In this document: in pieces, positions 7,407 to 31,400 of the stretch
Layout of the letters: each line of letters begins with the position of its first letter
How positions within the stretch are numbered: the first letter of the stretch is position 1
DNA from: Bugula neritina
Lineage: Eukaryota; Animalia; Bryozoa
Direction: 5' to 3'
NCBI GenBank assembly: GCA_964035545.1
Contig: OZ037769.1
Coordinates: 16,832,633-16,896,632, forward strand
Length of the DNA stretch: 64,000 bases
Position numbers and translations under genes: made by a program
The notes under the pieces: model-generated
What the model saw: the letters and a program-made list of their open reading frames with translations, nothing else
Told to the model about the DNA's origin: nothing
Databases searched by the model: none

Positions 7407-10400
7407 CTGAGTATAATATACAGAATATAGTGACACATGACTACACACCTGCCAACTACTTGTCAGCTACCTGCCAACTACCTGCCATCTGAGTATAATA
7501 TACAGAATATAGTGACACATAGACTACACACCTGTCAACTACTTGTCAGCTACCTGTCAACTACTTGTCAGTTACCTGTCAACTACCTGCCATCTATCTG
7601 TCAACTGCCTGTCAACTACCTGCCAACTACCTGTCAGTTCCTGTCAACTACATGGCAGCTACTTGTCAACTATCTACCATCTACCTGTCAACTGCCTGTC
7701 AACTACCTCCTAACTACCTGTCAGTTACCTGTCAGCTACTTGTCAACTACATGTCAACTACATGTCAACTACCTGTTAGCTACCTGCCAAACATATCTAT
7801 CATTATAAGCTGCGGTAATTTCTGCATCTCTGAGGCTACCATTGCATATTTCTGTTATCCTTGTTATCAATTTCTGCAGTTCTACTGAAATATTTCTGCA
7901 GTTTCAATTGCCATAGCAGCCACAAATCGACTGCTTGGACATATTTCATATTGTTTTGAATAGCTAACCTACTGGCTGACTTAACTACTTGAAACTCTTC
8001 TACTCTACTTGGCTTCCTGCAGTCATTGACTTGACTCAAGTTAATTTGGAACTTTGATTCAGTTGTTGCAAGTTTTCAAGGGACAACTTATTATTGCGTA
8101 TAAATTTTTAAAATTTACAGCAAGTGTCTGAATGAATGAATTTGGTAATCAGTTTAACCATTCAACACTTTCTATTGATACTGAATGTTTTTGAGGTGGG
8201 TGTATTAATGGAGAGGTTTAGAAAAGCCTGTGTTCTGAATTAGAAATGTAGCAAAAATTATCAAAAAATGAAAGAACTCTAAAAAATAAATTTATCCACT
8301 GCACTCCAATTTCAAAGTTATTTAAAGGATGGTAAAATATTTATATGGTATTTCAACGGTATAAAGATGTGTAATATAGTTCTAGATTATAGAATAGAGA
8401 TGTGTAATATAGTTCTAGATTATAGAATAGAGATATGTAATATAGTTCTAGATTATAGAATAGAGATGTGTAATATAGTTCTAGATTATAGAATAGAGAT
8501 GTGTAATATAGTTCTAGATTATAGAATAGAGATGTGTAATATAGTTCTAGATTATAGAATAGAGATGTGTAATATAGTTCTAGATTATGGAATAGAGGTG
8601 TGTAATATAGTTCTAGATTATAGAATATAGAAACTTTATAGAAACACGCCTTGTATAATAGAGCAGTGTCTGAAAGAGAAAAAGATAATAACAAAGCTAT
8701 ATTTAGCTTTGAGAGTAATTTGTGTTAGCTTGGGGGTTTGTTTAACTTGCTATTGGGTGTGTAGACCATCCACACAGTTGGATAGCCTAATGGTTAGGTC
8801 TCCTGGCTATTTAAAAGCTATTGTGAATGTATAGAGGCATCAAGACCTGATGTTCACCTAATAAGTTGCACAATAGAAGTAATAAACAGTTCTACTGCCA
8901 AGTATAATGATATATAAATAGTGAATGTACATGAGTATATAACTAAGCCACTAAGGAGGAAAAAGGTGACTGCATTTTGAATAATATGTTTATGCTTTGT
9001 TATTACTTATCTACTATAATATAGTTTCACAGATTATTGATCATCAATTAATGCACTATTTGTTGTTTTGTTTTTGTTTGTTTGTTTGTTTCTGGTGCTT
9101 CTGAGTTATAGATATATGTATATATAGTTATATATATAATTATATATATTATAGTTATATATAATTATATATATATATTATAGTTATATATAATTATATG
9201 TATATATAATTATATAGGACCACGGCGGTGAAAGGTGACCATTATAGTTATATATAAGTATATGTATATACTATAGTTATATATAATTATATATATATAT
9301 ATTACAGTTAGATATAATTATATGTATATATTATAGTTATATATAATTATATGTACATATTATAGTTATATATAATTATATGTACATATTATAGTTATAT
9401 ATAATTATATGTACATATTATAGTTATATATAATTATATGTATATATTATAGTCATGGATCATTATTATTTATTATTACTAAAACTATAAGAGCCTCCTT
9501 CTAGATTGACATTACAATTAAATCTGTTAAACTGAAAAACCATGCAACCAATCTGTGTCTAATGCATGTAAATTTTCAAATGGACATTATTTTGACTTGA
9601 TCAAAGACTTGAAACCTGACTCAAATTGACTTGGAGTCATTGCTTGACTTGTCAACACCATGACGTGCCTTATTGCGATTTTGCATGTTAACTGTTTATT
9701 CAATCATCATTATTAATTTGAATCCTGATTGATTGTGCAATTTTTGATAGGGTTAATGCCCTGTGGTCTGTACTTTGGACTTACAGGAGTGAATGTCCAT
9801 CAAGTTACTATAACTGTACTCATTACTGCAGTGAGCATGCACTAAACTGGGCAGATACGGCTTAATTAAATGATTTATTTATATACGAAGCCATAAAAAC
9901 TGCCAACATATAGAACGCTATGAAGCATGACTATATAACATTGGAAGAGAATGATGTGCAGTCAAGCAGCAAGTTTTATGCAGGCGAATAAACAGATCAC
10001 CTGCTTACAGTGTCACTAACGCTACTGACCGTGATAGGGAGTGATGGAGAACCTGCAACAACTTGTTGACAAGCTTCCCTCCACTCTTAAAGAATACAAG
10101 ACAACAGTGGCATGTGGCAGCATAGCTCTGCTGTCAGGTTACCTGCTGTATAAGTATCAGTCTAGAGGGAGAGTGAGAGAGAGTTGGAACAAGAGATATG
10201 ACTTTATAGTTGGTAAGTAATTCACAACTATAGCAGTGTTCATGATTAGAGAATAACATGATACACTGTAACCCACCATGTGAGCCTGTACTATAGGAGG
10301 TAGTAGTATGTACTATAGGTGTAGTAGTATGTACCATAGTGTAGTAGTATTACATCTATTGTTTCAACAGTTGGTGCAGGATCGGCTGGGTGTGTTCTTG

Positions 10401-28400: not shown

Positions 28401-31400
28401 ATAATCGACTCCGGTGGGACTCGAACCCACAACCTCCGAATGGCATCTAACAATTAGAAGTCCGACGCGCTATCCATTGCGCCACGGAGCCAGTTAGAAA
28501 ACACGACCCTTATTTAAATACTGATTTGATATGCTCAATAAAATTGTCATTAATAATAATCAACTTCTTTTGACTATAATTACTTGGAAATATTTCTTAT
28601 ATCCAAATAGAACTCTTGACTACAATAAATTTATATGTACAGTTGAACACGTGACTACTAGATAAACGGAGGTTATCAGCAGTGATAAGCTGTAGATCTC
28701 ACCACATAATGTTATACTAAGATGGAGAGGTCAATAACTGGGTCTAAATTACTTGGACCTTAAGATTCTGATTAGCCAATGAAAATAAGTAGACTTTCAA
28801 AGAGTATTTACTGATAAATATACATGTTACAGTGAGTAAATATTACTTCAGCACAGGTCTAGTATGAATAGTATATGGTGCTTAATTATTTCATAACATG
28901 TAACACTTGTTATATTATCATTGCACATCTCACTTTGCACACCATCTAACTGTCTATAAAACTAACTATTTCAATTCTAACAAAGCTGTTAGTTTCAGCT
29001 TTTGGATTAGAAACAAACAACCATATTGACAACCAACCCCACACTTTAGCAGCTCACAATGTCTCAGTGTGATAAAGTAACTGATGAAACAGAATATGAA
29101 ATGAAGTCACAGACTAAAACCTTCAGGGTTTTTCCGGAATAATTACATTGCTTGAAACTATTACAAAGTCGTATAGATATTTCTCTATGCCAAAATACTA
29201 AATAATACATTTATAAAATTATATCCCATATCTTGAGTAATAAAGCATACAATAAACCTTCCACATTATTCCAGTTATAGACACTAGAGTCGAGTATGCC
29301 AAGTGATGGTATTTCTATGACTACTCAACAAATACAGTGTATACTACACACTGTATAGTCTCTGAGCTTATTTACTTATATCTGTACATATATTAGTCTA
29401 CAGTTAATAACTCTGGTAATCCCAGCTGTTGATTGTAACTTCCAACAAGCTTGATATTCTATCTAAACATTAGATAGCAATTGCAGGCAGCTGATACAGC
29501 TTGTGTAAGAATCATCTTCTCTTGTTCTTACTGCATGATAACGGTAGCTGACAGGTAGTTGTGTAGAGACAATGCTAACCCTAGAAAAATACACAATAGC
29601 CTCACCTTTGCTAGACTGTGGTCCATGAGCCCGCATGTAGCTGTCGGCGTCCATGTCGGCTTCGCTAAACGGGGTGATGACGTCAGCAGTCACCTCTGTC
29701 ATGCTGCCGTCACTCAAATCACTCTCATCTGAGCCAGTGTTCTCTCCGAGAGCGTGGCCAAAGGGGAGGGGCGTACCTTTCATAGCCCCCTTGTTAGATC
29801 TCTACCAACATGGAGAAACACAGGCTATACTCTGCTGACATACAAGCAGCATTACGTAATATGATGTGTTGTCAGTCAGAACTCTCCTCTAATATATAAA
29901 CTATTTACTCTTCATTATTTCCTATTATGCAACATTTTATCTTCTTAAATTTCAAATCTTCAGCCATTCTTCCACCAGAGTGTACAAAGTGGCGAATGGC
30001 AGATATTAAAAGCAGAGCGAAACTTTTATTATAAATTATCAGAAATTCCCATGATGACTCATTGAGTAGATGGACTAAAAACTTAAGGTAATAATTTTTA
30101 GTTTTTTTTCTACAAATTGTTTCTATTTCTGAATTTATTTGCAAACTATTTTGTTTTTCCCACCTCATAGGTCCTCTCTTCAAGCACTGCTCTCATGTGT
30201 TTGGACGCAGCATGCGAATCTAGCCAATCAGGGCTGGCCGTACAAAAATGTTTCTCCACCAAATCTCTTAATGTTTTCTTGAACCAATTTTCATCTGAAA
30301 AAGAAGCGAGAATATTAAGTTATGTAATTACAACAAGTAAAAAGAATATATAACTAAAAACACACATAATATCAAGTAAAATAAATTCTTGAGCAAACAA
30401 GATATTAGAGAGACAGAGTCATTGCTTCTCATCTTACAGCCAATGTCAAAGTTTTCAACAGATTTATACAGACATACAAATGAGTGAAATTTTGATTTCT
30501 TACTTTAAAACCTGAGCCTACACTTGTCTGAGCCTACAGCACCTAAACTTTATGCAAGGTAGACAACTTTTCATAGTGTAGACAACTTCACATACATTGT
30601 TATATAGAGTAGACAACTCTAGATAGTGTACATATAGGGCAGGTAACTCTAGATAGTGTACATTAACTCACCATCTTCATAAAGCAGTCTGTCTGCGAAT
30701 GTTCTAGAAACTTCATGGCACCACAGCCTCACTAGCACCGGCATCATGGGAAGGGCAGCGTCAGCCGACAGCTTCTTTGTGTCTTTGCTATCCTTGACAC
30801 TGAGGGAGCGGAATTTCTCTTTACTCAGCTTCCCCCCGGGGAGGAGACCCCCGAACAGAGACTGGACGTTGCTGGCAGTTGTGGCTAAGGAAGGGATATA
30901 TTCATTAGCAGATGGTGTGAGTGGGAGGTTGACAGACTATTCCAACTAGAGCTCAAAGTTCAGTGTATATAACGTAGCACAATACAGATGATCTTGTTGA
31001 TTTTTGTTTAACATTTTGAAGAAATTTGGGAGTTGTGAAAACATGCAACTATGGCAAAACTTTCTGAATGAAGGTAAATTAGAGAAAAGTATACATGAGA
31101 ACTACACCAGGTAAAGAGACAAAATAAAAGTGCATAAAACATGTAACTATATCACACAGCATATAGCAACAAGACAAACTCCCGTCAATAGGTATAAAGT
31201 GAAGGAGATGCCAGATGGTGTATCAGTATCATTGCTTGGTGTCTATGTAAAACATTACCATTATCTTTCTTAGCCCTGGCTCTACGGGGCTTAGACTTGG
31301 TCTTTCTCGGGGAGAGGAGCAGCATCCCCTCCACAACATGGCTGATGTCGTGCAGAGTGAAGACGTAATGTCCGTGGGCAGGAGTGGCTCGGAACTTGTC

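Follow-up and report, generated by a model that had tools for sequence, protein, structure and literature searches.

In insects a clustered set of GMC oxidoreductase genes is kept antisense inside an intron of the flotillin-2 (Flo-2) gene, as an earlier note on the DNA studied here had stated, and genes nested in the introns of other genes are already known. DNHD1, the second point of reference for this work, is a divergent dynein which has been linked to human sperm-flagellum defects (PMC9916431, PMC13065322). Here we describe a locus of the bryozoan Bugula neritina in which the two subjects meet. The window is a stretch of 64,000 nucleotides (assembly GCA_964035545.1, contig OZ037769.1, positions 16,832,633 to 16,896,632) and positions below are counted from its first letter. 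On its minus strand lies a DNHD1-like dynein gene, and we consider it very probable that a single intron of this gene, about 22 kb long, hosts four antisense GMC genes together with a tRNA gene on the host strand. The dynein exons on the two sides of the cluster, their direct adjacency in relatives and the RNA on the donor side carry this reading.

The host dynein gene on both sides of the cluster

To the right of the cluster the minus strand of the window carries a Pfam match to AAA_6 (dynein AAA1) at 44662-45797, a P-loop exon at 40248-40601, an open frame with the AAA3 P-loop exon at 32733-33146 (Pfam AAA_7) and AAA lid pieces at 33602-33850 and 30652-31490. The DNHD1-like exons of the AAA3 lid (31259-31441, 30672-30884 and 30164-30294; Pfam DYN_lid) are joined in spliced RNA contigs. 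A dynein motor continues after AAA3, and the earlier note had expected the remainder to the left of the window. We located it there with a whole-genome profile search and a local tblastn. About 11 kb before the window begins, at C5:16821625-16821984, the minus strand matched AAA_8 (AAA4), and AAA_8, two MT (stalk) pieces and Dynein_C were found in this order on the minus strand of the left flank, between -8.7 and -27.2 kb. The 5185-aa DNHD1-like protein of the crinoid Antedon (P0008) was colinear with the same strand, its residues 280-5153 running from window position 65026 to -27235, and AAA5 and AAA6 were covered by tblastn to P0008 and to the Lingula protein P0021. The motor is present on one strand in the order AAA1, AAA2, AAA3, AAA4, stalk/microtubule-binding domain, AAA5, AAA6 and C-terminal domain. 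The P0008 alignment has one large gap only (residues 2914-3178); it separates the AAA3 lid from AAA4, and exons U1 and A to D lie at this place. The colinear domains and the P0008 alignment therefore show one DNHD1-type dynein heavy-chain gene of at least 92 kb, which spans the intron with the GMC cluster; it extends past the window's right edge and reaches about 27 kb beyond the left one.

Among 1.84 billion representatives the AAA3 exon gave six weak matches at E ≤ 1e-3. The only named relatives are annotated as 'dynein heavy chain domain-containing protein 1-like' in Antedon (crinoid) and Lingula (brachiopod), in agreement with the identity first proposed for the host; the DNHD1-like label thus rests on one exon, and the names stem from NCBI automatic annotation. 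No canonical dynein matched the exon at this threshold in the same set, and none of the matches was a full-length bryozoan protein showing the join between the two exons that flank the cluster.

These two exons were examined by direct reading. Exon A (29606-29801, minus strand) is the last exon before the long intron and belongs to an acidic linker between AAA3 and AAA4; it is defined by RNA splicing and by orthologous exons. It ends in phase 1 with ...CAG TCT AGC AAA G, followed by the good donor GTGAGG at 29606/29605, and has no stop codon. Exon B (7247-7406, minus strand) is DNHD1-like, begins in phase 1 and ends in phase 2. Its acceptor, ...tatactcag then ATGGCAGAC (..tactcag, then ATGGCAG), lies at 7407/7406, and the frame proposed by the earlier note is conserved in the protein matches P0001 and P0002. 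If A is joined to B, G+AT restores the open frame, and the reading of both exon ends proposed earlier is correct. Two further DNHD1-like exons continue the chain on the same strand, C (6712-6860) and D (5910-6023), with matching phases from 7247 to 6860 and from 6712 to 6023, ending at 5910. C-like exons occur in the relatives' contigs L012 and L030, and L030 also holds a D-like open reading frame that is about 75% identical. The motif pairs which had been noticed across the long intron, DVITPFSE versus GAITPFTE and GSDESD versus GSDESE, are present, one member on each side. Furthermore, Lingula P0021 carries a V(T/V)TPFS motif three times at the same linker position, and the shared TPFS-type motif is a real, repeated motif of the linker.

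The acceptors of exons B and C are themselves repeated. A second copy of the B acceptor lies about 80 nt upstream (7520-7487 versus 7437-7407) and reads ..tactcag then ATGGCAGG, then an in-frame stop. Five tandem copies of 38 nt (6861-7040) stand before the acceptor of exon C, and each of them repeats it.

For the donor side we placed RNA contigs from two runs (X1 and X2, from a 2016 'symbiont metagenome' RNA-seq source) and DNA contigs from a third run (X3) on window positions 26000-31999. The RNA contigs are spliced at 29801/30164, 30294/30672, 30884/31259 and 31441/31922, in all cases with CT..AC, which is GT..AG on the minus strand. About 5% of the exon sites differ between the RNA and the window and nearly all of these differences are synonymous. 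In the frame proposed by the earlier note the differences listed for exon A are seven synonymous and one non-synonymous, and the three upstream exons (30164-31441) show 13 and none, respectively. Exon A is under purifying selection in this frame, and the predominance of synonymous differences therefore supports the frame. In both runs the contigs stop exactly at 29606, and the RNA depth is close to zero over 28600-29599. Dynein transcripts ending at about 28.6-29.5 kb, which the earlier note had named as evidence that would speak against the long intron, were thus not encountered. Because of this lack of depth we ruled out that exon A is a terminal exon with a 3' untranslated region or that it is read through past 29606.

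The same observations bear on the idea that the cluster splits the dynein into two genes, a 5' gene (tail to AAA3) which ends after exon A and a 3' gene (linker, AAA4 to C-terminus) which starts at about 7.4 kb. The stop of the RNA contigs at 29606 would agree with such a split, as would the fact that the 29606-7406 junction was not observed. However, exon A runs without a stop into a strong donor and the silent kilobase behind it leaves no terminal exon or 3' untranslated region. Exon B enters in phase 1, lacks a start codon and has in-frame stops just upstream. In addition, both halves are conserved as one colinear protein in relatives, and we regard two separate genes as very unlikely. Of the proposed RNA joining from 29606 to 7406 the donor side stands, as it is transcribed, spliced and ends at 29606, but the junction itself was not seen.

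The homologous intron in relatives

Another indication that exons A and B belong together comes from fragments of related genomes, which we collected by word searches for each exon and by a pattern scan of metagenome contigs, working exon by exon throughout. Orthologues of exon A were found in L013-L019 and L025-L030 with 58-80% identity. In L013, L016, L018, L029 and L030 a B-like exon directly follows the A-like exon, and the intron between them is in phase 1 on both sides. In L013 it measures about 247 nt (A-like exon end GATG, donor GTGAAT; B-like acceptor ..ttctag then CT), in L016/L018 about 440 nt and in L029/L030 about 72 nt. Contig L030 (11.5 kb) displays the whole region on one strand: the AAA3 P-loop exon, the three upstream exons, A, B, the C-like and D-like exons, an 'RGVTFK' exon and AAA4. 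No GMC match was detected along the whole of this contig. The claim that 29606-29801 and 7406-7247 are consecutive exons is well supported by these fragments. GMC genes are absent from the homologous intron of L013, L016/L018 and L030. As this intron is only 72-440 nt long and GMC-free in all three relatives, the nesting of the GMC genes in the dynein intron would be recent and specific to the lineage of Bugula neritina.

The adjacent, phase-matched exons of the three relatives and the RNA depth together define an inferred single intron of 22,199 nt (7407-29605, minus strand), which contains the GMC cluster and the tRNA. The four neighbouring dynein introns verified by RNA are 362-480 nt long, and most P0008 homology blocks are spaced by about 200-1200 nt in the tblastn alignment. 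The earlier estimate of about 10 times the length of the other dynein introns was therefore too low, and relative to the RNA-verified neighbours the factor is nearer 50. It is not the only long intron, as the next one, from 5909 to about -4772, measures about 10.7 kb.

Several observations weigh against a single intron of this length or limit what can be said about its history. The RNA was not taken from the reference animal itself but stems from a lineage that has diverged from it by about 5% (it fits a different lineage of the species complex), and no RNA record crossing from 29606 to 7406 was seen with the RNA placed on 26000-31999. The continuity of the assembly was checked with DNA contigs for 26-32 kb only. 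In L014/L015 and L025-L028, the closest relatives sampled (upstream exons 83-90% identical), the 0.5-1.5 kb behind the A-like exon contain no exon B, and this stretch exceeds 1.2 kb in L014, L015 and L026. The intron of these relatives is already longer, and because its content beyond the first 0.5-1.5 kb was not visible, the age of the GMC insertion is not fixed. Finally, the exact break at 29606 suggests a fork in the assembly graph with at least two continuations, for example alternative acceptors, and extra or alternative exons may lie inside the 22 kb.

If so, there would still be one gene, but the 22 kb would not form one intron; one or more lineage-specific or alternative exons between the GMC genes would be spliced in (A to X to B), or several acceptors would compete. 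That two runs, assembled separately, both break at precisely the donor suggests a branch, and the tandemly duplicated acceptor of exon B and the five-fold acceptor of exon C point in the same direction. Alternative, frame-breaking splicing may arise from the duplicated acceptors, and so may the break of the RNA contigs at 29606. On the other hand there is no ancestral exon between A and B in the three relatives, A and B are matched in phase, no conserved minus-strand open reading frame was seen inside the interval and the RNA depth is close to zero between 28.6 and 29.6 kb. Additional exons are in our view unlikely, and we retain the single 22-kb intron in the following.

The genes inside the dynein introns

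The four GMC genes are all located on the plus strand, antisense to the dynein, and the tRNA is on the minus strand of the host, which agrees with the orientations given in the earlier note. The coding sequence of GMC gene 1 spans 10044-13686, and the tandem copies GMC2 and GMC3 span 14696-18778 and 19441-22875; start and stop codons were located for all three. GMC4 (24055-28296) is an older paralogue. Its RNA joints at 26980/27104, 27763/27841 and 28075/28161 are GT..AG and include exons specific to GMC4. All 11 homologous exon pieces are found without stops in each of the four copies, and the genes are apparently intact. Each copy consists of an N-terminal membrane-anchor-like exon, a GxGxxG exon and the Pfam domains GMC_oxred_N (PF00732) and GMC_oxred_C (PF05199), and a 14-residue GxGxxG motif for binding of flavin adenine dinucleotide (FAD) occurs in all four. 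We also read a ten-residue motif and the C-terminal ..GNTNAP.., which may mark a putative active-site histidine region; enzymatic activity is predicted. The exons are nearest to choline dehydrogenase (NCBIfam), the relatives with structures in the PDB are GMC enzymes, and judged by these exon-level matches the four genes are predicted choline-dehydrogenase-like GMC flavoenzymes.

GMC1-3 form tandem units of about 4.7 kb which are 78-96% identical with introns and spacers included, and they appear to be young tandem copies. This fits the proposal that the intron grew by tandem duplication of its passengers. GMC4 reaches about 89-97% identity with GMC1-3 in three patches only (25180-25351, 25847-26227 and 27911-28296), which fall in the FAD-domain and C-terminal parts, and its substrate-domain exons are 40-58% identical at the protein level. 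The pattern points to patchy gene conversion between GMC4 and GMC1-3. Genome-wide we counted eight GMC loci, half of which lie inside the dynein intron.

Relatives also carry GMC genes (contigs L020-L024), and in L021 the GMC gene adjoins a NEMP gene. These contigs contain neither dynein exons nor the tRNA and do not overlap with the dynein contigs. The comparison of DNHD1/GMC synteny suggested earlier hence gave a GMC-free homologous intron in three relatives, but it did not place the relatives' GMC genes with respect to the dynein. L020, a 10-kb metagenome contig, holds two tandem GMC genes (830-4151 and 5299-8707) with a period of about 4.4 kb, so tandem GMC arrays exist outside Bugula neritina.

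The tRNA gene in the intron is a tRNA-Arg(UCU) at 28406-28491 (minus strand), which was detected by ARAGORN and by Rfam (RF00005, 55.3 bits versus a threshold of 29). It has an intron of about 13-15 nt, an anticodon loop CUUCUAA followed by this intron, and a T8 run after its 3' end (Pol III terminator). There are about four near-identical copies in the genome, so the RNA contigs that cover 28406-28491 have to be read as coverage of a multicopy gene. The window contains no match for the loose RNA ends of 30 letters after 28296 and 28492; they probably stem from paralogues or other tRNA copies. The same tRNA, 94% identical, is found in the homologous intron of about 440 nt in L016 (700-787) and L018 (373-460), on the strand opposite to the dynein. 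Because of this shared location the tRNA would be an older resident of the intron, or a recurrent one, and in one of the two lineages its orientation to the host is reversed. The opposite orientation suggests that, at the edge of the GMC array, either a local inversion took place or the tRNA was inserted independently.

The tRNA also argues against an assembly artefact, in which a GMC array that belongs elsewhere was wrongly placed in the dynein intron. The cluster is flanked by tandem arrays and simple repeats, which could favour such an error. However, the tRNA beside GMC4 has a syntenic counterpart in the homologous intron of a relative (L016/L018), the depth of the X3 DNA contigs is even across 26-32 kb and thus also over 28.3-29.8 kb, and the assembly is of chromosome scale with 216 Mb (PMC11480708). 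A misjoin is extremely improbable, and we continue to treat the cluster as a genuine part of the dynein intron.

The next intron of the same dynein, between exon D and the 'RGVTFK' exon, houses another antisense gene. It is an LHFPL-like tetraspan gene on the plus strand at 1230-3314 (open reading frames of its exons at 1230-1982 and about 3075-3300; Pfam L_HMGIC_fpl, 2.5e-9). Both of its exons are kept at the same place and in antisense orientation in L030 (5872-5168 and 4732-4505), and because of this conservation it is an old nested gene, unlike the GMC cluster. Other introns of the dynein hold tRNA sequences as well. A tRNA-Thr(AGU) lies antisense in an intron of the stalk region (L002 2930-3004, plus strand; C5:16815562-16815636), and a borderline tRNA-like element was found at window position 42803-42874 on the minus strand (Rfam, 29.2 bits versus a threshold of 29). 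The AAA4 search also produced matches on the small contigs C193, C125, C165 and C41. They contain many in-frame TAA/TAG codons and no TGA, which fits a ciliate-type code, and for this reason these contigs probably entered the assembly from a contaminant or an epibiont.

Origin of the cluster and comparison with known systems

The following sequence of events would account for the locus. The ancestral intron would have been tiny, about 70-450 nt as in the relatives. In the lineage of Bugula neritina it would then have acquired a GMC gene, and about three rounds of local tandem GMC duplication, plus added simple repeats, would have enlarged it. Transcription of the host would have to pass through the whole cluster, and splicing would then connect 29606 to 7406, with host and GMC passengers as separate transcription units on opposite strands. 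We infer both this splice in Bugula neritina and the order of the events from the evidence described above. The antisense residence of tandem GMC arrays in long introns, known now from two phyla with different hosts, may also be more than a coincidence: the intron of a host restricted to sperm or germline could insulate the array transcriptionally and favour its tandem expansion and gene conversion, or couple the expression of host and passengers by transcriptional interference, and the tRNA at the edge of the cluster, which is inverted compared to the copy in the relative, could mark the breakpoint of a rearrangement or serve as a boundary. We consider this very improbable.

The locus shows clearly how captured genes have swollen an intron, but as such it is fairly ordinary and opens no new kind of biology. 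After the insect cluster it is the second example, and an independent one, of GMC genes arrayed antisense within a host intron, and the growth of the intron from about 72-440 nt to 22.2 kb can be traced, which is useful for the study of gene capture and intron expansion. In addition, the gene model of a very divergent DNHD1-like dynein is fixed by it, a gene which automatic annotation could easily split at the cluster.

Compared to DNHD1, the bryozoan gene shows the same motor order (AAA1-AAA4, stalk and C-terminal domain) and its best named relatives are the DNHD1-like proteins of a crinoid and a brachiopod. It differs in that it houses nested genes, namely four GMC genes, the LHFPL-like gene and tRNAs.

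With the insect Flo-2 cluster the locus shares a tandem GMC array which lies wholly in one large intron of an unrelated host and antisense to it. The host, however, is a DNHD1-type dynein and not flotillin-2, and the bryozoan array comprises four genes in 22 kb compared to about 12 genes in 83 kb. The order of the insect cluster is conserved across four insect orders, whereas the homologous bryozoan intron is short and GMC-free in three relatives; the insect cluster consists of old subfamilies, whereas GMC1-3 are near-identical recent copies. We also considered whether the locus belongs to the conserved insect arrangement and rejected this, given the dynein host, the young nesting and its absence from relatives. 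A profile search for the Flot domain (PF15975) gave no match in the Bugula neritina genome, a result that is uninformative. The different host gene and the absence of GMC genes from the relatives' homologous intron uphold the view that the bryozoan case is independent of the insect one.

Finally, the passengers resemble nested genes in general, including intronic tRNA genes, in being independent units in a host intron which are mostly antisense to it, and within the same dynein a conserved example is provided by the LHFPL-like gene of the next intron. The GMC case differs from these in two respects. The passenger is a whole tandem array that comprises half of the GMC loci in the genome, and a comparison makes it possible to follow how its intron grew from less than 0.5 kb to 22 kb.

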